Positions 1,037 through 64,000 of a DNA stretch of 64,000 bases are shown piece after piece. Below the pieces are notes generated by a model, which ran no database searches, was not told the DNA's origin, and worked only from the letters and a program-made list of their open reading frames with translations. Position 1 is the first letter of the stretch. Every line of letters begins with the position of its first letter. A program made the position numbers and the translations under genes. Origin of the DNA: Basidiobolus meristosporus CBS 931.73. Its lineage: Eukaryota; Fungi; Basidiobolomycota. Location: the NCBI GenBank assembly GCA_002104905.1, contig MCFE01000081.1, positions 1-64,000 on the forward strand, written 5' to 3'.

Positions 1037-2648
1037 TTAACAAGCACCCAGATCGGTCCACACATTTTGGCCATTATTTCCGGGAGTATCATTCTGAGTC
1101 CACCATTTGGCCTGCCAGAGATGCCCATTGTACGTTACCTTTTGTGCTCCGTTGTACGCCTGAGATGATTTCCAGGTATCAACTCCGCTGCAGACACCGG
1201 GTGTAGTAGTAGGTGTCGAAGTGGTAGTAGGCTTTGTCACCGAAGAAGTGGTAGTAGGTTTTGTCGCTGAAGAAGTGGTTGGAGGCTTGGTAGCTGAAGC
1301 CGTAGTGGTTACTGTCACAGGGGGTTGAGTGGTATCTGGCTGGCGAACAACCTGGACGGCATTCAAAAGCTCATCATTCGAGTCATTTGTCATATCCCAG
1401 AACATGACCCCCCGTAACCCCTGCTGCTTGGAATATTCGGCCTTAACCTTTAACGACTGTGGATCATCGTAAGATATGTACATCTTATTGCTAGAGCCGA
1501 ATAACCAAGGAGTCTGCGTTACATTATCCCAGTAACGATTCCAGCCGTTGATGGGGCTGGACGGCCCGTTCTTGAGAATTTCACTGCGAAGGTACTTCCA
1601 AGCCCAAAGTCCACCATAGACGGACCCTTCATTACAAAACGCATTTGGCTCGTTGGAGTCTGATGGGTCCCCTTTAGGCACGGTTGGTGACTTGGAAACG
1701 TACTGGTTGGATGGGTTCGAGTTCATGTCCACAGTAGCGGTCAGCGATCTGCCATAGAATGGCAGACCCATTACCAACTTGTTGGCCGGCCACTTGGCAT
1801 TCAACCAGGCCTTGGATGCTTGACGGAATGAAAATGGGTCTCCACCTTTGGTGTCGTAGTCAAATGGAGCATTTGGACCAGTTGTAGCAGACCAGCCGCC
1901 ATTGATGTCATATGCCATAACGTTGATAAAGTCAAAATAGGGGACGAATGCTGAAACATCCTTGAGCGGATTGCCACCAGGCCCGTCAAACGGCTGAACC
2001 CTCACAGCCGCAGTTATTAGCTTGTGCTCGGTAGGGAACTCCTTGTCAAGCGCAGCACGTAGTTCTTTTAGCAGGGTCAGGTAATTCGCAGTATCTGCTG
2101 CATCATAAACATTGCACACTGCTCCCTCTCTTGCAGGATACTCCCAATCAATATCAATTCCATCCAAGTCCCATCCGTCAGGGGTCTGCCTTCAGGTTTT
2201 GTATTTTTGCGGACAAAAACGAGAGCATTATTGATGAATTTCTGACGAAGCAACGGGTCGCGAACTACCAGCGAGAACGTCTGACTTCCAGTCCAGCCAC
2301 CGAGGGAAATCTGCACTTTGACCCCTTTGGGGGTAGCAAGTTGCTTCAGTTGGCGAATGGCGGTACCGTCATAATCCGGGTCGATGAAGATGTTGGTTGG
2401 GTCGTCTTTCTTCGTCAGAACACCGAAGCCTTGAAAAAGATTAGTGTTTTGAAATGGCAATCACTCTCCGGACTAATAGACTTACCGTAGTTGATGTGAG
2501 TGACCTTGTCATAGCTGAGCTGGCTAGGTTGCACATTTCCCCAAGGAACGTAATATCCCACGATCACTTTGTCATCGGCAGCTAGCGCTGACGGGGAAAG
2601 TACGATGGCAACGGAGAGGGCGGAAAGAAGAAATTGAGTAAACTTCAT
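1037..2648 (-). CDS. Secreted GH18 chitinase with Thr-rich linker and C-terminal CBM5/12 (ChtBD3-like) domain; one intron plus an apparent frameshift
   Basis: Signal peptide MKFTQFLLSALSVAIVLSPSALA, then VIVGYY, SLGGW, catalytic DGIDIDWEYP, VMAYD, GLPFYG and WDM motifs. C-terminal W..SQAY....VTYNGHLWQAKWWT is CBM5/12-like. Intron 2430-2485 (gtaagt...ctaat...caag). The frame changes near 2170-2190. Confidence 0.93.
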
Positions 2649-7498: not shown

Positions 7499-8638
7499 TT
7501 GCATATGGATCCCCATTCTCATTACTATCGACTTGGGCAGCATGCTGAGGCATTTCCAGGGATGGCCCCACACTATATATCCAACTCACATATACAGTCT
7601 TCGCCTTGCTTACCAGGTACGTTTAGATTTCTCTACAGAGAATTAAATGGCAGTCAACTCATCCTTTGGTATTTTCTAGACAAAGAAATCAAGGTGGAAC
7701 AGACAAGCCCATATAGATATGAGCCATATTCAAAGTCTCCCAACAAATGTAGCTCCACATCCACCGCAGCCGATAACAGCTCCAAGATAGATTTGAGAAT
7801 CAACGAGCCTTCCTACTATAGAGACTACTGCAATAAACGCCATGAATATCAGTCACCAGAGATGGACTCGCAACTACAAACGGCGATACAGTCAATATTG
7901 ACCGAATTTGAGTCCAAGAAAATATTCACCGCCTCTGGGACCACACCGACAGCCAAAAGAAAAAGGGCAAACAACGAGCAACTTCGGATTCTCAAACAGG
8001 TGTTTGAATACACCTTTTTTCCGTCCACAGAATTGCGAAATGAGCTGGCCAGAGTTTTGGAGATGACACCTCGAGCTGTGCAGGTGTGGTTTCAAAACAA
8101 ACGGCAATCTTGGAAATCATCCAAAGGGAAGTTTTCGAATGGGAAAAGGAGCACCTCACCTGCTGTGAACCCTTTAAAAAACCCCCCTCCTTCCGAATAT
8201 ACGCCGCCCGTGCTAGACTTACCCATTCGTAACTCGGCGCTGACTATGATGCCACCAACAACCAAAGTTCACAACGGTCACTTGTACAAGTCGACAGTGG
8301 ACAATGAGCTTCTAAACAGAACTGATCCATACCCATCGCCTGCAATGACAGAGCCCAGGTTTGCTCTTCGGGAATCATACTTTGAACCCTTGGCTCCATT
8401 CCACACACTTCACCCCCCGAGCCAGCAACAGCCCCCGAAAAGAAATCCATTGCTTGGCCACGACAACAAATTACCATCTTTGCTAGAAATGGGAATATCC
8501 TCACAGGGAAATTCACACCAAAATCCTCCACATGACATTCGGGTTCCCCCACCTGTAGAAAGCCGTGGATTCCTGTACACAGAGCAGCGCAACCAATTAT
8601 CTACTCTACCTGCACCTTATTCAAACACAAGATTTTGA
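7499..8638 (+). CDS. Homeodomain transcription factor (probable in-frame 63-nt intron 7617-7679)
   Basis: Homeodomain KRKRANNEQLRILKQVFEYTFFPSTELRNELARVLEMTPRAVQVWFQNKRQ with the WFQNKR hallmark; Pro/Ser-rich tail; gtacgt...ttctag intron signals. Confidence 0.9.
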   Translation: MHMDPHSHYYRLGQHAEAFPGMAPHYISNSHIQSSPCLPGTFRFLYRELNGSQLILWYFLDKEIKVEQTSPYRYEPYSKSPNKCSSTSTAADNSSKIDLRINEPSYYRDYCNKRHEYQSPEMDSQLQTAIQSILTEFESKKIFTASGTTPTAKRKRANNEQLRILKQVFEYTFFPSTELRNELARVLEMTPRAVQVWFQNKRQSWKSSKGKFSNGKRSTSPAVNPLKNPPPSEYTPPVLDLPIRNSALTMMPPTTKVHNGHLYKSTVDNELLNRTDPYPSPAMTEPRFALRESYFEPLAPFHTLHPPSQQQPPKRNPLLGHDNKLPSLLEMGISSQGNSHQNPPHDIRVPPPVESRGFLYTEQRNQLSTLPAPYSNTRF

Positions 8639-10683
8639 ATATGGTTGACTCCCTTAGGCATCCTTCAATTTAGCTGATCTTGTACAATAGCCGCATCATG
8701 TAAACTTAATTGACCTCTTAATAATAACCTTTAGAACACAGCATATTTACAAATATGAGATTGTCACAGGCGTATTCAGCCCTCTCCAGGTCTGACCTTA
8801 CCGGAATCCACTGACACCGAGATTGTTGAGTGGTGGTGGGATGTAATAGTGAACCAAGACATCTGTAACCGTCGTGAATGCATGGATTTCCATCCTACCA
8901 ATCAGTGTTCTATCAGGATTGGTAGATAGATTGTGATCTATATGTATGCGAAACAGCTTGGACCAATCATGACACGCGCATGATTAAAATTCATTCGGCT
9001 TGATTAATGATTCAGACAAGCTTAATTTAAGTCTGAGGGGGGGAGCAGGCAGGCATCGTTTTGGGCGAAAACCTATCTGAAGATCCGTAAATCAACCCCG
9101 TTCACATCAAGATCCAGTGATAAGCTTAACGCAGGGGAAATATCGCTAAGCCTCACATAAATTCACCACTCTGAATATCTCCGATCCGATCTGAGCCTCA
9201 GATGAGATCTAGCGGTGCTACTTGGGAATCGTATTGCAAGTGAGCCAGGTTGCCAACTCCCGCATCAACGGCCTAACCTAATCCCTTGCACCGACTTCCA
9301 AGGTCACATATCCCATTGGTGTTGATTGATTGGAATGGGAACAATGTACATCCCGAAACCTTATGAGTTACCGAATTTATCAACGTAGTGGAGCACTGAT
9401 AAAGGTATCGCAACTCTAATCCAACTGATGTCATACCTGATGAATTTGTACCCATTTCAGTGGGATAGATGAAACGTATCATTTGAGCATATGGAATTCT
9501 ATCTAGCCCAGCCACTTCAAGCCCGTTGCACATTTGCCGAACAGGTTGTAGCTATTATGGATCCCGTTTTGTGCCAGTGCACAAGGCAATCATTGTAGCG
9601 TACCATCACCCGTAGGATGACTTGGCGTAAACTGGCTACCATGACTTATTTGAGGGCCACCATCTCTTTGTCTCAAAGCAATAGTGCTTTAAGTGGACTC
9701 CGTTCATGTTTGAGTCGTCACCCTTCATTGGCTCCAAACAAACGGTAGGCTATTCCCACCGCCATTTCTGGACCAATCCAGTCCATGCTGATGGGTGCAC
9801 ACTGGGCGAAATCAATATTGAAATTAATATTACACATCCCCCTTTTCTCTTCTTGATATAGGGAACTACACTTGATCAGATCTTGGGGAAAAGGGGCCAT
9901 CGCTACTTGTACGAACATCGAATCTCTCTGGGAGGATACAGATCCCAGGTTGTACACGTTTCTATTTGAGGGATTTCTTCCCAGCCCGCCCCAACTTTCC
10001 CTGAACCATCAATCGAGGGCAACCTAAGAGTTTGCAATGTAGGTTGTGTTCGAGGTTGGAAGCGGGTCTAGACTTGGTGACGGTGGCCTCCCATTGTGAT
10101 GCAGGATAATCCAGATGCTGTGTCATCGATGGTCTGAACCCCCTGTGAAAAGAACACCATTTTAGGATCGGTAGCTTCCAAGGTGTGGTCAAACCGACGA
10201 AATGATGGATTGATGGAAGGTGGATATGGCGTATTGCTTTGGATCCTTCTGCTTCACCGGAGATGTCTCATCGTGGGGAGGAGCGACCATCACATTCCAA
10301 CCGTCATCTCATTGTTTGTTTTGGCACTCTTTCCATTAGAGGTAAACGTATATCCAGCGTACGACGTCGTCACGTGAACTCGATCAATTTCAGAGAAAAT
10401 GAACGGAATCATCGAACAAATCCCAAATCCCAAATTTTTCTGGCCGCTATAAAGCAACTGTGATCACGTCCTCCAAAACTCAGCCATCGCAGATTTACTT
10501 ATCTCCCTTCAAGAGTTTTCATGATGATTGAGGGGCCATTTATTCTGCGTAAATCAATTTCACGTTGATTCGCTAACACTGGTGAGATCCCTCTTCAAGG
10601 AACGATGACCAGAGTTTGATAGTAACCTCGTGACATTTCTATTCCATCTTGGAATGCATTTTACCTTCTAAGTTTGAATACTT

Positions 10684-11642
10684 CTACGGATCGGCTTCGG
10701 ATGCGCTTGATGCGCTATCGAGTACGCGATTCATGTTGAAACTAGGTCGATAGTTTCTAGCGATGAGCAGGATGGCGTCGCTGCAGCTACAACAGACGGC
10801 ATTTAACTTCACCCAGCCGACTGTGGATTGGAAAAGGAAGGTTAGGCGGCAGACGCATAGTTCCTCTCGGACTTGTTTGATCTTTTCCAGCACATATTCT
10901 TTCTGATCGGGGTGCACCAGGTTGGTGAGCTTGTTATTGATCAGGGTATCGCTTTCGACGCCAAGTAAAGTCTGACTCACAGAGGAGACATACACTATGT
11001 TCGGATCGGCAGTGTTTTGTAAAGCAAATACCACTCGAGGCTGTGGAGTTAATTGTAAACTCTCTCCGTTGTCGAAAAGCTCGTGTTGCAGACGAGTCAG
11101 CATGGCGTGGTTGCTGGGGCTTAAATTCTAGGAAAAGTTCAGTATTCTGTACAGTGGGAACAGCTAAGAAGTGGAGGGAGGGAATTGCCTTGGCTGTAAC
11201 TGCCCCATCAGCCTTGAAAGCGAACCATCTTTCAACAGTCTGGGCACGTTCTACATAGTAAACCAGGTCAACTGAAGGGTCAAAGGTCAAGGTTGATCGT
11301 GCTCTTACTAGTACGGCCGGCTTGTTCTGGTTCTATCTGGTTCAGAATGATGGTCCTTAAGTTGTAGCTTACGGAGACAAAGGCTTCCACAGTGATGTGC
11401 TCTCCATTTTTATGTTTAAGAACAAAACTACTTCCTTGGATCAAACTATCCTTCTTCAGGAAATAGGCGGAGCATAGTCTCCCCATAGCGCGCTGTTCTG
11501 GGAGGCAGATATCGGCCAGAGTAGTATTCAGTAGCTCGTCAGGCTCATAGCCCAGGACACGCTGGACACTTGGAGAGATGTACACCATGCTGGTGTCGAT
11601 ATCCTCTTTGCAGAAGATGAAAAAACTCTTTTCCTCTGTCAT
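10684..11642 (-). CDS. Two-PAS-domain protein (3 exons: 11642-11309, 11250-11189, 11127-10684; ~279 aa)
   Basis: PAS1 MVYISPSVQRVLGYEPDELL...LKHKNG; PAS2 PRVVFAL...IVYVSSVSQTLLGVESDTL...LVHPD. A GT-AG intron (11251-11308) and a proposed GC-AG intron (11128-11188) join three ORF-track fragments into one 840-nt frame. Confidence 0.75.
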
Positions 11643-12015
11643 CGAAAAGAGAACTGGTGAAAACGAGTCATGGAGGGCTGTCCTCATTTAAACTAAACCC
11701 TAAGTCTAAGCTCATCTGAGTACCTCATTTGATCTCAAATCGACTGATCTTCAATTTGGGGATGGGCCAGGTTTAGTCAATGTGATTTAGCAACGCTGCT
11801 AGAGAGATGTGGTTTAGCAACCCTCCTAGCGAGAAGTGATCATATAGACATCGTATAGAATAGAGTATGTACATAGAGTTAGTATATCGTATAGAGTATG
11901 TACATGGAGTTAAATGCAAGCCAGATGGGCTTGGGCTGAGGGGTTAAGGGGTTTAAAGCAAAACTGAGCTGATCAGCAAAAACGGATTTCATGTACAGTG
12001 GCAGGCAAAATGGGG

Positions 12016-12990
12016 TTACGCTTGGGTATTGTGTACAGTGCTTTCTGCATTCAGGTTGAAATGCGATTTCGACCGGTGAACAGGCCCTCGGCTACGGCTC
12101 AGGGTGCGCTTACTCTTGTACGAGTCTTTTTGGGCTCTGCGGAGCAGACGAAGCACTTTCTCCAAGGACTTTGCCATGGAGACCGGTGGCGGGTGCTGTG
12201 GATTCAAGTGGCGACCGGGATAGATCTCTTTCATCAGGTCAAGTGACCATCGCTCATATTCAGCCACTGAAACAAAGAGTTGATGATGCGAGCGGTGTAG
12301 AAAGGCAAGCTCCACTCGGGTCACTTCTCTCAAATCCAAACTGGTGTAGCGGGCCCAATCAGAGTTGGTAGGGGCATGGTCCTGGTGGTACTTTGAGGCA
12401 GCCATCAGGGCCCCGATAAGTGCCTTTCGCACATGACCAGAACGGTCCCTAATGCCTGCAGTGGCCTTGGACGGGTCTCTGGATCCTGCTGGTTGACCAA
12501 GGCTTCTGTAGGCATCGATATGGGACATCTCCGCAGTTAGCAGAGGCTGCATCCGATATATATACAGCAGTGATATCATCACGGTAGAATAGAACACTCT
12601 AGATATTTTGATTGTCTCTCTTACGAAGGCTCTGAGGAGGAGTCGCTTGGTTCGGCCGAGTGCGGATTCCCGATACCAGACTTGCTCTACAACATACTCC
12701 ACAGCATCTAGGGAGGTGGAGAATAAGCCTTCAGCAGTAGGAAACGTTAATACAGAGTCAGACCACCTACCAACAAGGCAATCCACGAATTCACCGTGGT
12801 GTCTGCACGTGGAGATTACCTGGGACATGGAGGGCTTGTGTTTAAGGAAGCATGCAAATATCGATAGGAGCTGGTTAATCTTCAGGGTTAGGCAAGCGAG
12901 TAGGCTAGCCAGGGTGAGAGGTAGGTTTTTTTGGTCTTTAAGGATGGTTTGCGCCTGGTACACCAAGTTAGTATAGCTAAGGAAAGCCAT
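12016..12990 (-). CDS. Pho80/Pcl-family cyclin (start codon uncertain)
   Basis: Cyclin-box-like FVRETIKISRVFYSTVMISLLYIYR ... LIGALMAASKYHQDHAPTNSDWARYTSLDLREVTRVELAFL, matching the typical KYxxDxxxxNxxW pattern. Confidence 0.85.
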   Translation of the reverse strand: MAFLSYTNLVYQAQTILKDQKNLPLTLASLLACLTLKINQLLSIFACFLKHKPSMSQVISTCRHHGEFVDCLVGRWSDSVLTFPTAEGLFSTSLDAVEYVVEQVWYRESALGRTKRLLLRAFVRETIKISRVFYSTVMISLLYIYRMQPLLTAEMSHIDAYRSLGQPAGSRDPSKATAGIRDRSGHVRKALIGALMAASKYHQDHAPTNSDWARYTSLDLREVTRVELAFLHRSHHQLFVSVAEYERWSLDLMKEIYPGRHLNPQHPPPVSMAKSLEKVLRLLRRAQKDSYKSKRTLSRSRGPVHRSKSHFNLNAESTVHNTQA

Positions 12991-13432
12991 TACAAGGAAG
13001 CGCAGGGTTGCGCATATTTCAATCAACAGTCATTTAACTTGATTGATTTGACCAATTCAAGGGGTCACATGCCCGCATGTAGAGTTACGTTGGCCAGCGA
13101 CAGTTTCGCACACACGATAGAAAGATGCTTGTCTGCGCATTGCAAACACTTATCTCCACTTCTTGTTTAAAGTTAAGCTGGGTGTGAAGATGATACATGT
13201 TTCTGCGAATGTGAAAATCGGTTTCATCACCAGGAGCTATCACCAGTTGATTTGCCACAGCATGCCGTATATGTACTCCTAGTGCAAACCTCTTGAGAAG
13301 CGATGTTTCAAAGAGGTAGGGAGCGCGAGACATGGAAGTATTTAAGAGCGGAACGGTCTCCTGGTAGCATTGTCCCTTTCTAGCTCGGCATTCATCTCCT
13401 CTCTTCTCTTCTCTCTCTGCACTCATCCAAAC

Positions 13433-13894
13433 ATGAAATTCTCCTGCCTTGCCCTTGTTTCGGTCATTGCCCTCGGCAGTTGCGTTGACGCTGCTTCTCC
13501 GGTGGGTGGCAAAAGAGTGATCTACGGAAACAAGGAGTACAATTACCAAAGTGGCTACCGTGTTGGTAAGAAGCAGGGCGAGGAGGATGGCCTGGACATC
13601 GGAACGAAGGATGGCTTCGGAAAAGGGTTCGATGAAGGCGTCAAGGTTGGATTCAAGAAAGGAGAGAAGTGGGGACAAGCCAAAGGGAAAGCGATTGGTG
13701 AGAAGCTGGGCCGTGAGCGAGGCGCGAAGAAGGGGACCGAAGTAGGTTATCGCGAAGGGCATGCAGATGGGTTCAAGTCAGGATTTGATGCCGGCATTGA
13801 CAAGTCATACTGGAAAGGGTTCAGAGATGGCAAGAGAAGACACAAGGGGAAAACCAGCTACAAGTATATTGACAGCTATGCCAAAGCATATTAG
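13433..13894 (+). CDS. Secreted Gly-periodic (Gxxx)n protein, paralog A (153 aa)
   Basis: Signal peptide MKFSCLALVSVIALGSCVDA; 23 consecutive tetrads from GYRV to GFRD (one G replaced by S). Confidence 0.88.
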   Translation: MKFSCLALVSVIALGSCVDAASPVGGKRVIYGNKEYNYQSGYRVGKKQGEEDGLDIGTKDGFGKGFDEGVKVGFKKGEKWGQAKGKAIGEKLGRERGAKKGTEVGYREGHADGFKSGFDAGIDKSYWKGFRDGKRRHKGKTSYKYIDSYAKAY

Positions 13895-14377
13895 ATCAGG
13901 TTCAACGCCCCTTCCTTCCCTCCATGTTCTGCAATCATTACCTTCGTAATTTTCAATAAACCATCTTCATCTTGATTCTATTTGATTGTCCCAACGAGAG
14001 AATAGCCATAGTTGCCAATGCTGTGTTGCATGTTTTGGGTGTCGAAGACATTGATATGCTACGAGTGGCGAGGATATTCATGCCGCTGCTGCGTGTTGCA
14101 TGGTATGTTATGGGTGCTGAGAAACCAGGCTGGCGATCCCTAGCCATGGAAGCCTTGACGCTTTGTAACGTGACTCCAAATAGATTTCAAACCACGAGAC
14201 TTGAAACGATACGCTCCTTACATCGGAAATAAGCTGATCAGTAGGTGTGCTTCATATCTGTTTCAGGCACTTCAAACAGGAACATGGCCCATCGAATAAA
14301 TAAGCTCGCCGTCGCCAATCTCCATCTCGCCAGTCCACACTTGGTTCTCCACCCTTTTCATATCCTCCTCCGCCATC

Positions 14378-14830
14378 ATGAAATTCTCGACTGTCGCACT
14401 GATTTCAGTTGGTCTCCTTGCCTCAACCACCATGGCCGCTTCCCCATCAAAAGGTGACGGCTACGGGAAGAGCTACGACAAAGGAGTTCGTGATGGGCGC
14501 AAGGACGGAGTCGAGGAAGGCCGCCAGTCCGGCTTCGATGATGCATTCTGGAAGGGATACGAGCAGGGGCATCAGGTCGGCTACAAGAAAGGAGAAAAGG
14601 TGGGCTATGAAAACGGGTTCAAGGTAGGGTCTGCCGCTGGCCACCAGAAGGGATCCATCCACGGAACCAATGTGGGATTCCGCGAAGGCGATGGGGAAGG
14701 CTTCAAGACCGGTTTTGATGCTGGAATGGATCGTGGCTACTGGAGGGGCTACAGAGAGGGCCACGTCAAGGGCGAAATCGAGACCAAGGGCAAATACAGA
14801 AGGAACCTTGGCGGTGCTTACAAGTACTGA
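14378..14830 (+). CDS. Secreted Gly-periodic (Gxxx)n protein, paralog B (150 aa)
   Basis: Signal peptide MKFSTVALISVGLLASTTMA; 27 tetrads from GYGK to GEIE (one S and one A substitution). It shares the segment VG(Y/F)REG...GFK(S/T)GFDAG.D..YW.G.R.G with paralog A. Confidence 0.88.
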   Translation: MKFSTVALISVGLLASTTMAASPSKGDGYGKSYDKGVRDGRKDGVEEGRQSGFDDAFWKGYEQGHQVGYKKGEKVGYENGFKVGSAAGHQKGSIHGTNVGFREGDGEGFKTGFDAGMDRGYWRGYREGHVKGEIETKGKYRRNLGGAYKY

Positions 14831-15272
14831 ACATCGAATCATCTCCTGTCCTCAACCCCCTTCATCACTACATTTTCTGTTCAATAAACCTCGCTTATAC
14901 TTCCTCAAAAGAACAAATTGCCTGAGTTATGCAAGTCCAATCGCGAAGATCCGATATATCTCTGATCGAATTTTGTCCTTTTATGAATCCCGTCAATTCA
15001 CCGACTCTTATCCACACTACAAATCTTTACCCAGTCACAACACTAGGCGAGCCATTCTTTTTTTTTCCACCCTATTTCATAAAACTGACTACTCCACTTG
15101 CCATTCCGCTTCCCTTTTGCATCCGTTCACTTCGCTACCACACCCGCCACCTCCTTATCCCAGCTCCCTCCTAGAAAGCCCCTAGAACGTGCGTTTTTTT
15201 TCGGTGCTTGGCTTAGTGTGAACCCGCTAGATTTCGTAGACTTGCAAAGGTATGCTTGGTATTGTCAATACC

Positions 15273-15944
15273 ATGTCTCTGAAGGATCCCATATTTGCTG
15301 TTGATGTAGAGTGCATCGCCACTGGACGTGGCCATAATGATCGAGCTGTCTGCAGCGTGGCAGTGGTGGATCAGAACCTGGACATCGTTTTTGAGCGTCT
15401 GGTTAAGCCCTCCTTGAAGATTCACAACTATCTCACACCCATCACCGGCTTCAAGGAGGGTGATTTGGATAAGGGAGAGCCACTAGAGGTGGTTCTCCGG
15501 GACCTCTACAGCTTCCTTCCCACAAACTCCATCCTCATTGGGCAGGCCATCGATGGAGACATTTCCTGGCTGGAACTGAAGCAGGGGGTTCATTTCAAGG
15601 AGCGCGTGGATCTGGCTGAGGAGTTTGCTACAAGGCATCCGGTTTACGGAAGCATGATGTACTACTCCCTTGCGCATACCTCCAGGGTTCTGCTTGGATA
15701 CGAGTGCTTCGAGTCAGGTGGGTCACACAGCGCAGCGAATGACGCCAAAGCTTCCATGATGCTTTACAAAGAGTACATTATCCCCAAGAAAGCCAAATAC
15801 GCCAGACACATCCTATCCGTCGCCACGCGCCCATTGCCAAGCATTGCCAAGAGAATGAACTACCGTTGCGACGATGTTTGCATGGCCGCCTACATGCCCA
15901 AGTTCTGCTTCTGTGGGACAGCAAGCAAGCAATCGACCGCCTGA
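15273..15944 (+). CDS. DEDDh 3'-5' exonuclease (REX/RNase T-like)
   Basis: ExoI AVDVEC, ExoII GQAIDGDISWL, ExoIII HSAANDA; YLTPITG motif typical of REX proteins; Cys-rich C-terminal tail. Confidence 0.88.
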   Translation: MSLKDPIFAVDVECIATGRGHNDRAVCSVAVVDQNLDIVFERLVKPSLKIHNYLTPITGFKEGDLDKGEPLEVVLRDLYSFLPTNSILIGQAIDGDISWLELKQGVHFKERVDLAEEFATRHPVYGSMMYYSLAHTSRVLLGYECFESGGSHSAANDAKASMMLYKEYIIPKKAKYARHILSVATRPLPSIAKRMNYRCDDVCMAAYMPKFCFCGTASKQSTA

Positions 15945-16214
15945 CCTCGGACCCCTTCCAACCCCTCACTCACACCCCCTAATGCTTCACTCTTGACCCA
16001 TTACTCACCAAAAGCTATCCTTCGTTATTTATATCTAAATGTTATCCAACCCTCATTACTATTGTATATTTTTGGATGTTCGGCAGAGCAATGTGTGTTG
16101 TTCGTTTCTCATGTATGTGGCCGTTCCTTTCTCAAGGGTCTATGTTATTAGAATAAGAATCAATTCAAACCCCCCATCGGACAGATTATCTCAATCTTTA
16201 TTTCTCATTGGCAA

Positions 16215-17323
16215 TCAGGACGAGGTGAGACTGGTGAGGTCGGAGAAATCCATCGTAACATCATCCACCGACTTGTATGTGGCCAACATCGGGGTAACGC
16301 TGATGTAGCGCTGGTTTATGGCGAATGCATCCGAGTCCTCTGGCAGCTTAGCCGGGTCGTGCAACCACTTCAGGTCTGGTGCGAACTTGTAGACAACCTC
16401 TCCTTCGGCGTCCTTCACCGGCTCGAACAGCGAGCGATAGACATTCTGGTGCAACTTGGTCACCATGATGGGTCGCTCGGGCTCGTCGACCAGAGGGATA
16501 TTGATGTTGAATAGCTCCACTCCTTTGGGCCATCCGCGGTTCCATATGTGGGAAATCACTGACAGCGCCATGGAGCACGCATTTGCGACCTTCTCCTCAG
16601 TTATCGTGTCGCGGTTGAAATAGGCGAACGACAAGGCGATCGCTTTCTTCGAAGCCAAGCAGCCATCCAGTGCGGCTCCAATAGTACCCGAGGCTAGCGC
16701 GGATGCTCTGGAAGAATTGCGGCCGAAGTTAGGGCCAGATATCTATGGAAGCGCTGTTAACGCACGACTCTGCCGCTCTTTTGAGCTACACCACTTACCA
16801 CCAAGTCAAACTCTTCTTTGGCGAAGATGTGATGGAGGCCAATGTTGACGCACGTGGCAGGGGTGCCTGAGGGATTCCACAGGGTCAATACAGGGTGACC
16901 GAAACAAAGGGTGAGCTTCGAAACGTCCACCTACCGCTCAACAAGCACCAGGTTTTGGAGGAGTTCTCCCCCGAGGCCTTGACCTTCTCTACCTCGTTGG
17001 TATCCTGGTTGTAGTAAGTGCACCGGACCGAATCCTGTATGTAGAAGGCTTTGGAAACCCAGGACTTCTGCGAATCGGGGATGCAAACACTACCGAAGAA
17101 AGTCTGTTTAGAACGGGTGCCGCTACACGGGAAATCGCGCGGTCGGTTCGACAACGGGACTCTCGTCCAACTCGTCCCGCTTTGTGCTAGAAAAAACCTA
17201 CTAATACTCCCAACCGAGGGTGGCCTCCAGCGCCTTGACGAAAGGAAGCAGGAAGGGGCTTTCAGGACTGGGCGGGCCGTCGTCGTTGGTGATAAATACC
17301 CTGGGCTTAGGTGTGGTCAACAT
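16215..17323 (-). CDS. surE: SurE-like 5'-nucleotidase/acid phosphatase (4 exons, ~290 aa)
   Basis: Spliced product MLTTPKPRVFITNDDGPP...VCIPDSQKSWVSKA...GTPATCV...ISGPNFGRN...SGTIGAALDG...NINIP...ISVTP. GT-AG introns at 17090-17201, 16867-16934 and 16743-16798 all keep the frame. Confidence 0.93.
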
Positions 17324-17746
17324 GTGAGATATGGTAAGCTACGGAAGCGTACGATTGATTGATAAATCCTGGAAAGAGTCATTCTGATCTGGTATGTATA
17401 CTCACTGAACTGTACGTAATATCCGTGTGGTATAAGTGCGATTTAGTTGTCCTTCTCACACCTTAATCAGTTAACGGGTATATATTCAGGAACATCTGGC
17501 GGATCTACCTGGCCTTATGCAGGCCAAACCATGAGTCATCATCGCTCAACTTAATCAAGAAAGGGAAAGTTAAGCATAATAGGAAAAAAAGAAACATCCT
17601 TGCATTTCAGGCGAGCTTTTTTTTTCTACTGGACATTGATTCAAATATTGCCATCAGCCGGTGGTTTTCTTCGTTGACCTTTTCGGAAAACAATAGACCA
17701 ACGGAACTCATCAATCACCTGCCAAGTATCTCTTACCGAAGAAAGC

Positions 17747-20077
17747 ATGGCTTCCATAGAGCAAAAAATGGAGAACCTCGAAGTGAACGACAAGGCTCAG
17801 CAAAAGCCCAAGAGCACAGAGAAAAAGCAAAAGAAGGCCAAGGCTGCCAAGGGTGGTGAGACCGCATATCCTCTCGAAGTAAACATCTAGTCCAAGTTTT
17901 TCCCTTCTGTTTGTATTACTCGGACCCTCAGCATGCTGATGATACTCTTCCTCCCTCATCGCACAGATTTCCCCTGCTCCTGAATATTTGGAACACAGAA
18001 TCAAGATGTTTGAGCAGCTCAAGCAGGAATACGACGAGGAAGTCAAGAGTAAGTGATTTGTCGAAATTCGTCAGCCTCGTGTTCGTGTATTCACTCGGGT
18101 GTCCATCTAGACAAGCCACGTGAGCCTATTACCATCACTCTCGGCGATGGCAAAACCAAGGAGGGAACCTCTTGGGAAACCTCTCCCATGGACATTGCTA
18201 AGGGGATCAGCAAGTCCCTCTCCGAGCGCGTTGTTATCTCCAAGGTCGATGGTGTTCTTTGGGATCTTCTTCGCCCTCTCGAGAAGTCTTGCACTTTGGA
18301 GTTGATCGACTTCGAGAACGATGAGGGTAAGAGAGTCTTCTGGCACTCCAGCGCTCACATTCTCGGTGAGGCCTGTGAGCGTCACTACGGCTGCCACCTT
18401 TGCATCGGTCCCCCATTGGAGGACGGATTCTACTACGAAATGGGTGGTATGAACGATCGTGCTGTTTCTCAAGCGGATTATCCCAGCCTTGAGACCCTTG
18501 CCAAGAACATCGTCAAGGAGAAGCAACCATTCGAGCGTTTGGTGATCTCCAAGGAGAACCTCTTGGAGATGTTCAAGCACAACCCATACAAGATCCACAT
18601 CATCAAGGACAAGATTCCCGATGGCACCGCTACCACTGTCTACCGCTGCGGACCTCTCATTGATTTGTGCGTCGGTCCCCACGTTCCCCACACCGGTCGT
18701 ATCAAGTCCATGGCCGTCATGAAGAACTCTGCTTCCTACTTCCTTGGTGATGCCAACAACGACTCTCTTCAGCGTATCTACGGTATCTCCTTCCCTGATA
18801 ACAAGCAGATGACTGAATACAAGAAGTTCATCGAAGAGGCCGCCAAGAGAGATCACAGAAAGATTGGTAGAGAGCAGGAGCTCTTCTTCTTCCACGAGCT
18901 CAGCCCCGGTTCTTGCTTCTTCCTTCCTCACGGTACCCGCATTTACAACACTCTCATGGAATTCATCCGTGGTGAATACCGCAAGCGTGGTTACACCGAA
19001 GTGGTTACCCCTAACGTCTACAACATCAAATTGTGGGAACAGTCTGGTCACTGGCAAAACTACCAGGAGAACATGTTCTCTTTCGAGATTGAAAAGGAAA
19101 AGTTTGCCCTCAAGCCCATGAACTGCCCTGGTCACTGCCTCATGTTCGGTAACCGCGAACGTTCTTACCGTGAGCTCCCCATCCGTATGGCCGATTTCGG
19201 TGTGTTGCACAGAAACGAGTTCAGCGGTGCCCTCACCGGATTGACCAGAGTCAGAAGATTCCAGCAAGATGATGCCCACATCTTCTGTACCCAGGACCAA
19301 CTCGAGTCCGAGATGGACGCCACCTTGGACTTCCTTCAACACGTCTACGGAGTCTTCGGCTTCACCTTCTTCCTTCGTCTTTCCACCCGTCCCGAGAACT
19401 ACATTGGAGACATCGAGGTGTGGAACAACGCCGAGAAGAAGCTTGAGGACGCCCTCAACAAGTTCGGCAACCCCTGGGACATCAACCCTGGAGATGGTGC
19501 TTTCTACGGACCCAAGATCGATATCACCATTTCCGACGCTTTGGGCCGTAAGCATCAATGCGCCACTCTTCAATTGGATTTCCAACTCCCCGAGCGTTTC
19601 GAACTCCAATACCGTACTCCCCAAAGCGAGGATGCCGACAACGCCTTCAAACGTCCCGTCATCATCCATCGTGCCATGTTGGGCTCCGTTGAGCGTATGA
19701 TCGCCATTCTTACCGAGAGTTTCGCCGGTAAGTGGCCATTCTGGTTGTCCCCTCGTCAAGTGATGGTCATCCCAGTTACCGGGGTGTTCAACGAGTACGC
19801 CGAGAAGGTGCGTCAAGTCCTGCACAACGCCGGACTCTACGCCGAGGCCGATCTCAGTGACAACACATTGAACAAGAAGATCCGTAACGCCGAGCTTGCC
19901 CAGAACAACTTCATCTTCGTTGTTGGTGGAGAGGAAGAGTCCACACAGAGCGTCAACATTCGTAACCGTGACGACGCCGGCACCAAGGCCAAGGGACAAA
20001 CCATGCCATTGAGCGAGGTTGTGGAGAAGATGGTTAGACTCAAGGAATCCAGATCAATCCTCAACCAACTTGATTAG
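17747..20077 (+). CDS. THS1: Cytosolic threonyl-tRNA synthetase (3 exons)
   Basis: TGS domain, editing motif [57 protein letters not shown] and anticodon-binding domain. Introns 17879-17966 and 18049-18110. Confidence 0.98.
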
Positions 20078-20531: not shown

Positions 20532-21227
20532 TCAGGCAGAGGGGGTGACCATCGTGTTGGCGACCTCCCTGTGCCCGGCCAGATTCTTCCGAATGCCATG
20601 ATGGCTGACTCCTTCTCCGTTGATGGAGTAAAACACGCAGTTGCCTGACTTCCGGGCCACGCTGGTGTCTTCGCAGAACGTGTTGCAAACCTTGATGGGC
20701 GGTGTGTAGAGGTGAAGGGAGACCGCCTTCTTCACCGGGGAGTCGTTCGAGACCCGGTGAAGACCGATCGTATCCGAGATATAGGTGACCTCGTCCCGTT
20801 CGCAGACGCTTTTCTTGCGTAAGCTCATGGGCTTGGAGTTGTGGGAGTCTCGGTGGAGCTTGCTCTCGTCGAGCTCCTCCGGCCAGTGGTATTGGCTCTC
20901 GGTGAGCTTCCCGTCCAGCATCTTCACTATGCAATGGCTGCCTGCGTGATCATGGATGGGGCTTTGCTGGCCCTCACCCCAGCAGAGGACCAAGAGGTTG
21001 TATTGGCCATTGCCATTGTCGACCAGGTTTCTCGTGTACTTGTACTTATCAAAGTGGGCGTACCGCTGCCAGTCGGACGCATTCGACTGGTAGTTGCTCA
21101 TGATCTGCATCACCCGCTTGACGTCGACATCTTCCGAGTCGAGGCCCTCGTCGCCAAGCTCCTCGCGGATCACTTGGACCAGCTCTGACATGCTTTTGGG
21201 TACGGGAACGGGGTAGGTTGACAACAT
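20532..21227 (-). CDS. CDO1: Cysteine dioxygenase type I, copy A
   Basis: YTRNL, LCWGEGQQSPIHDHAGSHC (2 His ligands plus cross-link Cys), GLHRVSN (3rd His) and SLHLYTPP (Ser-His-Tyr triad). Confidence 0.96.
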   Translation of the reverse strand: MLSTYPVPVPKSMSELVQVIREELGDEGLDSEDVDVKRVMQIMSNYQSNASDWQRYAHFDKYKYTRNLVDNGNGQYNLLVLCWGEGQQSPIHDHAGSHCIVKMLDGKLTESQYHWPEELDESKLHRDSHNSKPMSLRKKSVCERDEVTYISDTIGLHRVSNDSPVKKAVSLHLYTPPIKVCNTFCEDTSVARKSGNCVFYSINGEGVSHHGIRKNLAGHREVANTMVTPSA

Positions 21228-22072: not shown

Positions 22073-22765
22073 TTAGGCGGTGGGCATGATCATCCGGCTC
22101 ATCCTTTCCTCCTCCTGGGTATTGCTTTCCGTGCACTTGTATTCGGGTCTGTGGCCGTGGATCGAATGGAAGACGCAGTTACCGGATTTCCTGGCCACGC
22201 TGGTGTCTTCGCAGAACGTGTTGCAGCTCTTGATGGGTGGTGTGTAGAGATGTAGGGAGATGGCCTTCTTCACCGGGGAATCATTCGAGACTCGGTGGAG
22301 GCCGATCTTGTCCGAGATATAGGTGACCTCGTCCCGTTCGTAGACGCTTTTCTGCAGTAAGCTCATCGGCTTGGAGTTGTGGGAGTCTCCGTGGAGCTTG
22401 CTCTCGTCGAAGTTCTCGGGCCAGTGGTACTGGCTCTCGGTGAGCTCTCCGTCGAGAATCTTCATCACACAGTGACTGCCGGCGTGGTCGTGGATGGGGC
22501 TCTGCTGGCCTTCACCCCAACAGAGGACCAGAAGGTTGAACTGGCCGTTGCCATCGTCGACCAGGTTTCTCGTGTACTTGTACTTGTCGAAGAGAGCGTA
22601 CCTCTGCCAGTCGGACGCATTCGACTGGTAGTTGCTCATGATCTGCATCACCCGCTTGACGTCTACGTTTTCCGAGTCGAGGCCGTCGTCGCCAAGCTCC
22701 TCGCGGATCACTTGGACCAACTCGGCCATGTTCTTGGGGACTGGAGTGGGGTCGGTGGACATCAT
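22073..22765 (-). CDS. CDO1: Cysteine dioxygenase type I, copy B
   Basis: Same catalytic motifs as copy A (IHDHAGSHC, GLHRVSN, SLHLYTPP); C-terminal ~25 aa unrelated to copy A. Confidence 0.96.
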   Translation of the reverse strand: MMSTDPTPVPKNMAELVQVIREELGDDGLDSENVDVKRVMQIMSNYQSNASDWQRYALFDKYKYTRNLVDDGNGQFNLLVLCWGEGQQSPIHDHAGSHCVMKILDGELTESQYHWPENFDESKLHGDSHNSKPMSLLQKSVYERDEVTYISDKIGLHRVSNDSPVKKAISLHLYTPPIKSCNTFCEDTSVARKSGNCVFHSIHGHRPEYKCTESNTQEEERMSRMIMPTA

Positions 22766-50051: not shown

Positions 50052-53000
50052 TGTTGAAATATTGGACTATTTGGTATCATTCAGCAGCTAAAAAATTTAC
50101 TTAACAATTCTAGGCTAGTCTTAGTCACTGTAGGACTCATTTACTGCCTTAACTTTGCCACTTTCTCCAGATATATGATCTTATGATTATTCCCCTATAG
50201 TCAGGATCAAATTAGCACTATTACCAAACATTATGTACTAACCCTGAAACTGTTACAGAATGCTCCTGAATATTGAGAAACCCTCCCTACTTAGTGTTGC
50301 AGCTGTATTAATTCTACAAAGGTATAAATACTGAGCTTCTTTATGAACAAACTACAGTTCAACTATTATCACTATTTCTTGATAAGTTCCTTATATCCAA
50401 ATCACTTCTTAAATTGCAACAGGTTATGAGCCCTGGTTGCCTTAATCTACTCAAAAGATGATTTCTACCAGCAAACAAAGCAACACCAACATCTTCCCTG
50501 TAAAGGAGAGGTTTGATGGGAAGAACTACAGACTTTGGAGAATCAAGATGCAGATCCACCTTGAGGAAAGAAAGCTTTGGAACATAGTAACTGGAAAGGA
50601 AGTTGAGCCCAAAGGAATAGCAGAAGATGTGGAGAAGTTTCAAGAGAAGGAGAGAAAGGCCTTCAATGCAATATGCATCAATGTGAAAGACTCCTTCATT
50701 GGACAAATCCATGCCTCAAATACTGCCAAAGCAGCATGGGAATCCTTAGAGAAGATCTTTAGAGCAAAGTCAGTATCAAGCAAGCTTTATTTGAAACAAA
50801 AGTTCTTCAACATGAGAAAAAAGCCAGATGATGGCATGCTACAACTCATTACCAGAATGGAGACACTTGCAGAAGAACTTTATAGTATTAATACTGATGT
50901 AGATGATGAAGAAAAGATACTCTGTCTGCTTTGCAGCCTACCAGACAAGTATGAGCCACTCATACTTTCTTTTGAAAGCAGAGAAGACAACTTGACTTTA
51001 GACTATGTCAAAGGAAGACCTCTCCATGAAGAACTCAGACTTAATGATCAAGCAGAGAAAATTGAAGATAATGCTTTATTCAGTTCAGAAAGGCATACAG
51101 AAAAGAAGGGAAAGCAACAAAACCAAAGAAAACCTGGCTGCTGTAACTATTGTAAGAAGCCAGGACACTGGGCAAGAGAATGCAAGAAGAAACAAGCAGA
51201 CAAAAAACAGAAACTAGAGCAGGCAAACCTTATAACTACCGATGAACAGTTATTTGTCACTGTACAAGAGAGTGCAAGTAACCAAAGTAATGAATGGTAT
51301 ATTGACTCTGGAGCATCACAGCATATTTGTGATATAAAGGATTGGTTCAGCAACTTAAAGACTATTCCCGTAAGAAAGGTTTATCTGGGAGATAACTCTG
51401 CATTGGAAGCTACTGCCAGTAGGTCTATACAACTAAATATGAGTGATAACTCAGGGGCAACAACAGCAAAACTGACTGACGTACTCTATGTACCTGGAAT
51501 AGCTAAGAACCTACTCTCAGTCAGTAAAGCAACTACTCAGGGACTGATATTTGTTTTTACTAAGCTGAGCTGCTCAATATTGAGTGAAAATGGACAAAAA
51601 TTAGCTTTAGGAATCAGAGATCACAATATATACAAGTTACAATGCAAGATCATTGTACCTGAGTATGTCAACATTGCTGAAACTGATGAAACCAGCTGAG
51701 AGACGTGGCATAGGAGGCTAGGACACATAGGGGAACAGAAAACGAGCCAATTGGTGAAAAATCAGCTTGTTTTGGGCCTAAAATACTCAATTCCAACCAA
51801 ATTGAATGTTTGTAAGGGATGTTCATATGGCAAACAAGCTAGGCAACGTTTCAAGAGCTCAGAAGGCACCAATACCACCAAAATATTGGCTATTGTACAC
51901 CTAGACATATGTGGCCCCATGAGAACACTGTCCTTTGGAGCCAAGAGATACTTTATGACGCTTATTGATGACAAGACAAGATATACATGGGTGTACTTCC
52001 TCAAAGCAAAGGATAGAGCTTTAGAGACATTTAAGCACTTCAAGAACATGGCAGAAACACAAACTGGGTGTAAATTGAAGGTACTACAAAGTGACAATGG
52101 AGGTGAATACTGCTCAAAGGAGTTTGCAAAATACTGCTTGTCTACTGGTATACTTCAACAGACCACAGTTCCTCATACTCCACAGCAAAATGGAGTAGCA
52201 GAACGTGCAAATAGAACAATAGTAGAGATGGGAAGATCTATGCTACATGATAAGGAAATGGACTACAAGTTTTGGGCTGAATCTTTTGCTACCACTGTAT
52301 ATATCAAGAAAAGATGCCCAACAACAGCACTACGTGATTCTACACTCTTGGAAGCATATACAGACAAAAAACCAGATCTCCTGCACCTCAGGATCTTTGG
52401 CAGTGATGTTTTTTATCACATCCCTGACAAAAAACGCTCAAAGTTGGAACCAAAGAGTAGAAAAGGGATCTTTCTTGGGTATTGTGAAGATACTAAAGGG
52501 TATAGAGTGTATGATGGCAAAATTCAGAAGCTGATCAAGAGCAGGGACGTTGTATTTGAGGAGAATTCAGATCAGAAAGCCACAGAAATCATTGGCCAGC
52601 TGCCTGATGATGCAATCCACACAAATGAAGAAGATACGTACCAAATCCAGCCAGAGATGGAAGATACTTCTACCAGTTCCAGATCAGAACAGATTATCCC
52701 AGTTAGGAGATCTACCAGAATAAGAAATGCCCCTGGATTCTGGTGGCAGACATCCAATGATCATGAAGAAGCTTATCTTGCCTTATGTGCCAAACCTCAG
52801 AATCTGGAACAGGCAATGCAAGGTCCAAATGCTACTAAGTGGCAACAAGCCATGCAGGAGGAGTACCAATCACTGATCAAAGCAAAAACGTGGGAACTGG
52901 TAGATTTACCAAATGGGAGAAAGCCAATAGGATGTAGATGGGTCTACAAGATCAAGATAACCTCAAATGGTGCCGTTGATAAGTACAAGGCTAGATTAGT

Positions 53001-54483
53001 AGCTAAAGGCTCTTCCCAGATCCAGGGACTAGACTTTAAGGAAACATTTGCTCTGGTTGCCAAGTTTAACTCTATTAGGACAGTTCTAGCCCTGGCAGCT
53101 GTACACAGTGTAGATCTACACCAAATGAACGTCAAAACAGCCTTTCTAAATGGGGATTTGCAAGAAACTATATATATCAAGCAACCAGAAGGTTTTACCG
53201 ATTCAAAAGGCCCCCATAAGGTGTGCAAACTTAGAAAATTGTTGTATGGGCTTAAGCAGGCACCCAGAGCACGGTATAACAAGATTGACACATATCTAGA
53301 GGAAATTGGGTTCTCTTGTAGCATTGCAGACCACAGTATACATGTGAAACAGCTCAAAAAGGGTGTGATCATCCTAGTTCTTTATGTGGATGACCTAATT
53401 ATAGCTACAAGTGATCAAGAGGCACTTAAACAGACGAAATCAGATCTCTTCAGCAAGTTTGAGATGAAAGATCTTGGAAAATTGAGCTATTTTCTTGGAA
53501 TTGAGATCAAATTTGACATACCTACGCAGAAAATTGTGCTGAATCAGTCTAAGTACATCAGGGACACTCTTAGACGCTTCAAAATGGAAAATTGCAAGCC
53601 TGCAGCAACCCCTATGGACAATAACCTGAAATTAAGTAAATCTCAGCCAGTTATAGATGAAAACAGCTCAAATATGGACCAAAACTTTCCCTATCAATCA
53701 ATGGTTGGTAGCCTAATGTACTTGATGGTGTCTACATGTCCAGATATTGCAGTAGCAGTTGGAATAGTTAGTCAAGACATGCAGAATTATGGATCAGATC
53801 AAATTGCAGCAGTTAAGCGGATTTTCAGATATCTACAAGGTACCATAAATATGGTACCGGAATACTCTGGAGCAGCTAATAGGCAAATTTGATGGTTATA
53901 GTGATTCAGATTGGGGTAGGGATCTGATTGACAGACGCTCTACCTACCACAGGCTATGTATTTCTTTATGCTGGTGCAGCTATTACTTGGAATTGCAAGA
54001 AACAACCAACTGTGGCACTATCTACAACTGAAGCCAAATATGTGGCTGCATGTCAAGCAACTAAGGAGGCTATATGGCTACAAAAATTATTCAAAGACTT
54101 AGGTTTTAATTCAGGTGAACCAACATGTATTTACAAGGATAATCAAAGTTGTATTTCATTAGCTAGAAATCCTACTAATCACACCAGAACTAAGCACATT
54201 GATACACAGCATCACTTTGTGAGGGAAGCTGTAGAAAATAACTTAGTGGAGCTGGTTTACTGCCTAACTGACAAAATGGTGGCAGACATATTGACAAAAC
54301 CAATAGCTAGGCCACAGTTTGAGATTCTTAGAGAGAAATTGGGATTAAGAAATTATTTAGTTGAGGGGGAGTGTTGAAATATTGGACTATTTGGTATCAT
54401 TCAGCAGCTGAAAATTTACTTAACAATTCTAAGCTAGTCTTAGTCACTGTAGGACTCATTTACTGCCTTAACTTTGCCACTTT
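50052..54483 (+). mobile_element. Ty1/copia element family C2, copy 1: 5' LTR 50052-50421, PBS, gag-pol, PPT, truncated 3' LTR 54372-54483
   Basis: PBS ggttatgagccct; CNYCKKPGHWAREC; WYIDSGASQH; WHRRLGH; DNGGEY and NGVAER; KARLVAKG, YGLKQAP and YVDD; RNase H ALSTTEAKY and KHID; PPT tgagggggag. One stop at 51697-51699 and frameshifts near 53885 and 53945. Confidence 0.97.
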
Positions 54484-63400: not shown

Positions 63401-64000
63401 TCACCAATTGGCTCGTTTTCTGTTCCCCTATGTGTCCTAGCCTCCTATGCCACGTCTCCCAGTTAGTTTCATCAGTTTCAGCAATGTTGACAAACTCAAG
63501 TACAATGATCTTGCATTGTAACTTGTATATATTGTGATCTCTGATTCCCAAAGCTAATTCTTGTCCATTTTCACTCAGTATTGAGCAGCTCAACTTAGTA
63601 AAAACAAATATCAGTCCCTGAGTAGTTGCTTTACTGACTGAGAGTAGGTTCTTAGCTATTCCAGGTACATAGAGTATGTCAGTCAGTTTTGCTGTTGTTG
63701 CCCCTGAGTTATCACTCATATTTAGTTGTATAGACCCACTGGCGGTAGCTTCCATTGCAGAGTTATCTCCCAGATAAACCTTTCTTACGGGAATAGTCTT
63801 TAAGTTGCTGAACCAATCCTTTATATCACAAATATGCTGTGATGCTCCAGAGTCAATATACCATTCATTACCTCGGTTACTTGCACTCTCTTGTACAGTG
63901 ACAAATAACTGTCCATCAGTAGTTATATGGTTTGCCTGCTCTAGTTTCTGTTTTTTGTCTGCTTGTTTCTTCTTGCATTCTCTTGCCCAGTGTCCTGGCT
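60414..64000 (-). mobile_element. Ty1/copia family C2, copy 2 (5' part beyond the window); complete 3' LTR 60414-60785
   Basis: Near-identical reverse complement of 51157-54371; RT motif YVDN; stop at ~61400; frameshifts at ~61665 and ~61212. Confidence 0.97.

Follow-up and report, generated by a model that had tools for sequence, protein, structure and literature searches.

Proteins in which glycine recurs at every fourth residue (GX3; the tetrads are written here as Gly-x1-x2-x3) have been studied so far as short intracellular dimerisation devices, with ten units in Yae1-Lto1 and about 2-10 in FliH. Exchange of Gly for Ala in the GX3 motif of Lto1 abolishes Yae1-Lto1 binding (PMC4523923), and in AlphaFold models the Yae1-domain/Lto1 pair is an intertwined coiled coil whose glycine interface is continuous (PMC12810181). 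For FliH, helix-helix dimerisation has been attributed to the repeats, the side chains of aromatic residues touching the glycine backbone of the partner (PMC2674601). The paper that defined the deca-GX3 motif stated that no other eukaryotic protein carries it (PMC4523923). Here we describe two tandem genes, A and B, of the frog-gut fungus Basidiobolus meristosporus CBS 931.73. They lie in a window of 64,000 nucleotides (GCA_002104905.1, contig MCFE01000081.1, positions 1 to 64,000 of the forward strand) and encode small, probably secreted proteins that consist almost entirely of GX3 tetrads.

GX3 arrays of genes A and B

Both genes were identified from the list of open reading frames (ORFs) and its translations. 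Annotated genes of 153 and 150 amino acids match them in the same assembly and contig, the annotated locus (L003) being identical to window positions 11273-19944, and the existing records for A and B carry no Pfam family. The pair has the following layout:

13433-13894, forward strand: gene A, intronless coding sequence, 153 amino acids
13433-13492, forward strand: signal-peptide-like N-terminus of A, residues 1-20, inferred cleavage after Val-Asp-Ala
13553-13840, forward strand: GX3 array of A, residues 41-136, 24 tetrads (23 Gly, 1 Ser)
14378-14830, forward strand: gene B, intronless coding sequence, 150 amino acids, colinear paralogue of A
14378-14437, forward strand: signal-peptide-like N-terminus of B, residues 1-20, inferred cleavage after Thr-Met-Ala
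14447-14782, forward strand: GX3 array of B, residues 24-135, 28 tetrads (25 Gly, 2 Ser, 1 Ala)

The preliminary description of this DNA had pictured tandem proteins built nearly throughout of Gxxx tetrads, in which Gly is rarely replaced and then by small residues. The translations agree with it, as one Ser in A and two Ser and one Ala in B are the only replacements. The longest strict run of Gly is 21 tetrads in A and 19 in B. When each mature sequence was shuffled 200,000 times the longest strict run was 9-10 and the observed values were never reached; the glycine periodicity of both proteins is far beyond chance. No tandem repeat was found in A or B at the DNA level, and therefore the period is a feature of the protein and not the product of recent slippage. 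An origin of the GX3 period in a DNA tandem repeat was ruled out on the same ground.

Lys, Arg, Asp, Glu and aromatics make up most of the x positions. Phe or Tyr occupies x1 in 9 of 24 tetrads of A and 13 of 27 of B; at x2 charged or polar residues prevail (with a charge in 19 of 24 and 15 of 27, respectively), and x3 is either charged or Val/Ile. The mature proteins are ~14 kDa each and basic, with isoelectric points (pI) of 9.75 for A and 9.28 for B; their grand average of hydropathy (GRAVY) is -1.21 and -1.28 and their Gly content ~19-21%. Neither has further domains beside the array. Mature A and B are free of cysteine, the sole cysteines (both in A) being located in the signal peptide of A, and inspection of the translations revealed no N-x-S/T sequons. 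The C-terminal residue is Tyr in A and B, as had been noted before, and also in all four orthologues in Basidiobolus ranarum; the ends are Ala-Tyr in A and Lys-Tyr in B.

Both proteins begin with Met-Lys-Phe-Ser, followed by a hydrophobic core of ~14 residues, small residues at positions -3 and -1 and the sequence Ala-Ser-Pro. This signal-like layout is retained in four of the four B. ranarum orthologues. The N-termini look cleavable, in line with the signal peptides that had been assigned to both proteins, and their reading by eye indicates that A and B are probably secreted. A Lys-Arg (KR) pair after a short propeptide had been pointed out in A as well. It is present here, following residue 26, but it is missing from the A orthologues of B. 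ranarum, and a Kex2-type propeptide was thereby ruled out as a feature of the family.

Conservation and selection in Basidiobolus

In B. ranarum (GCA_040143965.1) the syntenic tandem A-B pair is found at two loci. The order at one of them (L005) is PAS protein, unknown gene, A, B, exonuclease, SurE, threonyl-tRNA synthetase (ThrRS) and two cysteine dioxygenases, and at the other (L004) A, B, exonuclease and ThrRS. Orthologues of B. meristosporus and B. ranarum are 71-82% identical with a synonymous divergence (dS) above 1; A and B are colinear and share 43-49% identity, the pair in the window 45-47%. The ratio of nonsynonymous to synonymous substitutions (dN/dS) is ~0.08-0.10 among A orthologues and 0.10-0.14 among B orthologues, and both genes are under strong purifying selection. 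The tandem arrangement together with the orthologue and paralogue identities places the duplication, as judged from these sequences, before the split of the two species, with purifying selection on each copy since. A and B thus appear to be an old tandem gene pair of Basidiobolus, restricted to this genus as far as seen.

The x positions had been described as diverging between the paralogues while selection maintains the period. The first part is correct, since across A and B jointly the x positions are invariant in just 5-7 of 24 tetrads. The second part needs to be modified: within each trio of orthologues not only Gly is invariant (23-24 of 24 tetrads) but also the x positions in 15-19 of 24, with dN/dS of 0.08-0.14. 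Because x residues are mostly invariant among orthologues, selection acts also on the residues between the glycines and not on the period alone. A and B accordingly retain differing, separately conserved surfaces. In one aligned tetrad all A orthologues have Gly-Phe-Gly-Lys (A residues 61-64, 13613-13624) and all B orthologues Ala-Phe-Trp-Lys (B residues 56-59, 14543-14554), a fixed swap of a small for a bulky residue. One may speculate that in an A-B pair in register this swap could make a knob-into-hole contact.

The block of A, B, exonuclease and ThrRS is doubled in B. ranarum with ~80% protein identity between the copies, and this suggests a segment of the genome that is duplicated or hybrid. 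In the search with the exonuclease, B. meristosporus was represented by the window's own copy alone.

Relatives of the repeat

The Pfam family Yae1_N (PF09811, deca-GX3) matches A with 46.7 bits, in four stretches, and B with 42.4 bits, the gathering threshold being 27.5. Yae1_N is characterised by at least ten consecutive Gly-x-x-x units, and A has 24 tetrads and B 28. By the Pfam rule both are members of Yae1_N, so that they do not fall outside the known families. NCBIfam FliH equivalogs scored 30-40 bits versus cut-offs of 180-293 and aligned to the repeat part only; no Pfam FliH match was found for A or B. PHROG 4785, a family of unknown function, also aligns. A word-index protein search with A alone gave no match, and the ESM Atlas feature search no usable match.

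An exhaustive HMMER search with the A/B profile as query retrieved 1498 clusters at E <= 1e-3, of which 89 were at <= 1e-10 and none at <= 1e-30. The best 150 of the 1498 clusters are mostly long proteins, bacterial- or phage-like in appearance. Among these 150, runs of at least 24 tetrads are present in 99 (the longest has 96), signal-like N-termini in 76 and lipobox-like sites in 12 of these 76, and 41% of the tetrads have Tyr and 9% Phe at x1. Long GX3 runs behind signal-like N-termini are common; the preliminary description had known of no characterised secreted fungal family with repeats this long. One of the best 150 (P0012) ends in a phage tail tip domain (Phage_tail_C). Long G-Tyr-x-x arrays (up to 96 tetrads) are widespread in proteins of this bacterial- or phage-like kind (e.g. 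P0001, P0007 and P0012), and some of these proteins have phage tail tip or lectin-like domains. An experimental description of the long G-Tyr-x-x module was not found in the literature searched.

How much of this likeness goes beyond the repeat itself can be seen from an order test, in which x positions scored in register were compared with the same match after shuffling of the tetrad order. A/B orthologues and paralogues gave z values of 13.6-22.9. The best 150 matches, almost all of them non-fungal, had a median z of ~0 and one marginal value of 4.1. The median of ~0 means that the likeness to bacterial and phage proteins lies in the grammar of the repeat and not in residue order. At the level of sequence, homology or transfer between A/B and these proteins is neither demonstrated nor excluded.

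There are further GX3 proteins in fungi. A second tandem pair is located on B. meristosporus contig MCFE01000077.1 (L002) at 8488-9474 and 10001-10726. Its members are P0151 (K493DRAFT_390562, 241 amino acids) and the upstream neighbour L002:8488-9474 (328 amino acids), both with signal-like N-termini starting with Met-Lys-Phe/Tyr-Ser. The 10-residue motif G-x-D-x-(G/S)-Y-W-x-G-(Y/F) is common to the second pair and A/B. The order test of the second pair against A gave a weak z of 1.7; common descent of the two pairs is likely, as far as their sequences can tell. The L002:8488-9474 protein, which has no recorded Pfam family, carries three Pro-rich units (Ala-Arg-Thr-Ser-Pro-Ile-Lys-Val) N-terminal to the array and about five Gly-Trp-Asp-Asp-Lys-Lys-x-Asn-Gly units C-terminal to it. 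P0101 is an environmental orthologue of P0151 on a 904-base contig of the Joint Genome Institute (JGI); the contig ends with AATAAA and then a short A run, resembling a polyadenylated transcript.

Outside Basidiobolus, P0041 (L006:3001-4200, LSSL01002704.1, GCA_001953115.1) is a protein of 399 amino acids whose N-terminus is signal-like; it has 45 tetrads and ends in a Cys-rich tail. LSSL is the accession prefix of Smittium mucronatum (PMC5954228), an insect-gut fungus. The P0041 gene has a GC content of 41% in a flank of 27% GC, and the flank fits a Smittium genome. A, B and P0041 are exceptions to the stated occurrence of the motif in Yae1 and Lto1 only among eukaryotes. Pfam Yae1_N is enriched among the genes that a Novosphingobium diet induces in the nematode Pristionchus pacificus (PMC13068944), which hints that other eukaryotes also have GX3 families expanded beyond Yae1/Lto1. 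No paper describing A or B was found in the literature searched; they constitute an undescribed fungal family.

Predicted structure and the proposed glycine seam

AlphaFold2 models of the single chains are helical. In A, helices are predicted at residues 38-72 and 74-139 (mean pLDDT 57, pTM 0.34), and in B at residues 29-65 and 69-147 (mean pLDDT 67, with 80-86 over residues 31-100; pTM 0.43). The helix break occurs at the same aligned place in both models, just ahead of an invariant Lys-Gly-Glu-Lys block, which suggests a hairpin. A sequence search of the PDB found no comparable chain, the matches being Plasmodium low-complexity inserts only, and Foldseek against the PDB returned nothing at E <= 0.001. 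Searching the Atlas by shape yielded helical rows of no specificity, one being a phage cluster in which Yae1_N is partly present.

We propose that A and B are secreted helical rods that assemble via a glycine seam, either as homo-oligomers or as A-B, and have a structural, adhesive or polyanion-binding role outside the cell; in our estimate the chances that this is right are about even. The array, in which Gly is followed by an aromatic or hydrophobic residue and then by two mostly charged ones, would fold into long alpha-helices arranged as a hairpin, with the kink at the same aligned place in A and B. The glycines would line up as a continuous seam winding slowly round the helix. Such a seam may allow backbone-to-backbone packing of two helices, flanked by the Tyr and Phe residues at x1, which would yield a closely intertwined coiled-coil rod, probably a right-handed one. 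A period of 4.0 on 3.6 residues per turn would shift the glycine stripe by +40 degrees per tetrad, so that the stripe would go once round the helix in 36 residues (~54 angstroms). Helices spaced for glycine contact would then form a steep right-handed supercoil and cross at an angle near 40 degrees. This is also the angle of GxxxG-mediated helix pairs.

By the Yae1-Lto1 analogy, and given paralogue surfaces that differ but are separately conserved, A may pair with B or each protein with itself. Outside the cell, a cationic Tyr/Lys-rich rod would most plausibly be a structural or adhesive part of the wall or matrix, or a binder of polyanionic surfaces. A fibre, adhesive or coat protein, as envisaged in the preliminary description, is possible. 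A more far-reaching version is that A and B together form an extracellular heterodimeric or higher-order right-handed glycine-seam coiled-coil rod and that the same module is used in the Smittium protein and in bacterial surface and phage tail proteins (20-96 tetrads); this we consider rather doubtful.

Several points weigh against our proposal. The confidence of the AlphaFold2 models is only moderate, as the pLDDT and pTM values above show, and a free monomer with 20% glycine could be disordered. Fold searches gave only generic long-helix or hairpin matches (Z < 8, VIA-align wide). Secretion is inferred from reading of the N-termini. In a metagenome scan with the six-sequence alignment, none of 600 pattern matches was confirmed as a relative of A/B. 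The neighbours of A and B (exonuclease, SurE, ThrRS and cysteine dioxygenases) give no functional clue.

If the more far-reaching version is true, the rod would be a fibrous building block absent from solved structures, and long GX3 arrays would represent an extracellular module of stalks or fibres that is general and has been overlooked. Bacterial and phage proteins commonly contain such arrays, and roughly half of the 150 best matches have signal-like N-termini. What appears to be new in A and B is that the motif makes up nearly the whole protein, is 2.5 times longer than deca-GX3 and stands behind a predicted signal peptide. Being small and having no cysteines, N-glycosylation sequons or other domains, A and B would be convenient models for the assembly of long glycine-seam helices. 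They would also reveal what such an assembly does extracellularly.

Flanking signals and genomic context

Candidate transcription signals accompany each of the two genes. The AATAAA-bearing 11-mer is present in two copies in the 64-kb window, one per gene, where 0.02 would be expected, and it also occurs 3' of both B. ranarum A orthologues. The TATA-like elements were found by eye and are to be taken as inference:

13339-13346, forward strand: putative TATA-like element, then CT-rich leader, ~90 nt 5' of the ATG of A
13952-13962, forward strand: 11-mer with AATAAA, likely polyadenylation signal, 58 nt past the stop codon of A
14296-14303, forward strand: putative TATA-like AT-rich element, then CT-rich leader, ~75 nt 5' of the ATG of B
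14880-14890, forward strand: second copy of the 11-mer with AATAAA, 50 nt past the stop codon of B

A scan for bacterial promoters and terminators found no enrichment. The genes adjoining A and B encode an exonuclease, SurE, ThrRS and cysteine dioxygenases, and A and B are in line with the adjacent housekeeping genes in GC content and in GC content at third codon positions (GC3).

Elsewhere in the window there are two tandem cysteine dioxygenase type I genes (20532-21227 and 22073-22765, both on the reverse strand), which are in tandem also at B. ranarum L005. The ORF at 1037-2167 (reverse strand) has a glycoside hydrolase family 18 (GH18) chitinase domain and a carbohydrate-binding module (CBM5/12). 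According to a published survey CBM5 is rare among Zoopagomycota, Basidiobolus excepted (PMC9391592). ORFs of Copia-type long terminal repeat (LTR) retrotransposons (gag, integrase, RVT_2) lie at 50458-53892 (forward strand) and 61617-63755 (reverse strand). The right half of the window, which holds them, is AT-rich, with GC of ~0.40 versus ~0.50 around the genes.

Alternative explanations

The charge of A and B raises the question whether they are secreted cationic antimicrobial or bacteria-binding proteins, whose basic amphipathic helices would bind anionic envelopes and inhibit or agglutinate competitors in gut or dung. Mature pI values of 9.75 and 9.28, a net positive charge and richness in Lys, Tyr and Phe would suit such a role, Basidiobolus lives among gut bacteria (PMC9391592), and the enrichment of Yae1_N among diet-induced nematode genes (PMC13068944) can be added as a lead only. 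However, at a GRAVY of -1.2 there is no hydrophobic face of the membrane-inserting kind, 130 residues are long for a pore-forming peptide and the KR processing site is not conserved. Moreover, purifying selection and fixed paralogue-specific residues are unlike the fast evolution usual for defence peptides, and we regard this explanation as unlikely. The same composition can be read in another way, namely that A and B are disordered secreted protectants of the wall or spore surface in drying, similar to hydrophilins or late embryogenesis abundant (LEA) proteins, with a period that serves helix formation on dehydration only. Gly of ~20% and a GRAVY of -1.2 agree, by composition only, with the definition of hydrophilins (Gly > 6% and high hydrophilicity), which is said to be that of Garay-Arroyo et al. 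2000. The moderate AlphaFold confidence would also be explained, and Basidiobolus forms resting spores exposed to drying. Yet no LEA or hydrophilin Pfam family was matched, and most x residues are conserved by position between species, which is beyond the expectation for compositional disorder. The aromatic-x1 grammar is found again in bacterial surface and phage tail proteins, and these are folded as fibres or rods. All this makes a hydrophilin-like protectant quite improbable.

The likeness to bacterial and phage proteins could also mean that the ancestor of A and B was acquired from bacteria or phages and gained eukaryotic signals and a duplication in Basidiobolus. Such a transfer bears on origin alone and could be combined with any of the other readings. 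Its probability is low in our view, although the best non-fungal matches are bacterial- or phage-like, have 20-96 tetrads and in many cases signal peptides or lipoboxes, A and B are intronless, and many bacterial-like genes have been reported for Basidiobolus. The likeness to the best 150 is one of tetrad composition (median z of ~0 after shuffling of order, a single value of 4.1), GC and GC3 equal those of the adjoining housekeeping genes, and eukaryotic-type signal peptides and AATAAA signals are present. P0041 of Smittium mucronatum, signal-like and with 45 tetrads on a contig of typical GC, suggests that such proteins are native to zoopagomycete fungi. Finally, the only characterised GX3 proteins are intracellular adaptors (PMC4523923, PMC2674601), and the N-terminus of A and B might be an anchor in the endoplasmic reticulum (ER) or another membrane, with the GX3 rod working as an adaptor within the secretory pathway. 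We find this very improbable. The hydrophobic region is short (~12-15 residues) and, with its small -3/-1 residues, of the type usual in cleaved signal peptides. A KDEL/HDEL-type end and a second hydrophobic segment are absent, and the C-terminus is hydrophilic. Nor do the proteins end in [LIM]-[DES]-[WF], which is described as the C-terminal tag of clients and adaptors of the cytosolic assembly of iron-sulfur clusters (CIA) (PMC10245660).

Comparison with known systems

A and B, in our preferred reading secreted glycine-seam rods, can be compared first with the CIA adaptors Yae1 and Lto1. These have Gly at every fourth residue with the same grammar of x positions, and they likewise are two paralogous GX3 proteins, whose heterodimer forms through the GX3 motifs (PMC4523923). 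The AlphaFold2 helices of A and B match the published glycine-seam coiled-coil models of the Yae1-domain/Lto1 pair (PMC12810181). Yae1 and Lto1 have 10 tetrads, however, and A and B 24-28. Yae1 and Lto1 are cytosolic, whereas A, B and their four orthologues have a signal-like N-terminus. A and B are strongly basic, lack regions beyond the repeat for the binding of Rli1 or of the CIA targeting complex and do not carry the C-terminal Trp/Phe tag of the Lto1 type (PMC4523923).

FliH/YscL (SctL) shares with A and B a soluble, hydrophilic GxxxG run (PMC2674601). It is cytoplasmic and bacterial with ~2-10 internal repeats (PMC2674601), and the array of A and B is longer. The C-terminal ATPase-binding domain, through which FliH binds FliI, is absent from A and B, and no match was obtained over full-length FliH. 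In membrane glycine-zipper peptides the x residues are hydrophobic. The membrane-active glycine zipper suggested in the preliminary description does not agree with the charged x residues, GRAVY of -1.2 and pI of 9.3-9.8 of A and B, and because of these charges a membrane-inserting zipper is unlikely.

In length and in the aromatic x1, A and B resemble the bacterial and phage G-Tyr-x-x proteins (P0001, P0007 and P0012; PHROG 4785) with their 20-96 tetrads. About half of these are signal-like, and their arrays would hence be extracellular or surface-exposed. They differ from A and B in being longer and multidomain, with the array as a spacer or stalk beside other domains. Their x2 and x3 are acidic or polar, as compared to Lys/Arg-rich in A and B, and there is no order-specific similarity. 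The second Basidiobolus pair and P0101 are comparable as well: they come from the same genus, are arranged in tandem, have signal-like N-termini and GX3 arrays and share the 10-residue motif with A and B. Unlike A and B, they are 226-328 amino acids long, with a Pro-rich repeated spacer N-terminal to the array and an array interrupted by Ala, and one member of the pair has a Trp-Asp-Asp-Lys-Lys repeat past the array. Taken together, these comparisons of sequence suggest that A and B are best described as a presumably extracellular, motif-only variant of the known GX3 motif, with 24-28 units and restricted to a fungal lineage.

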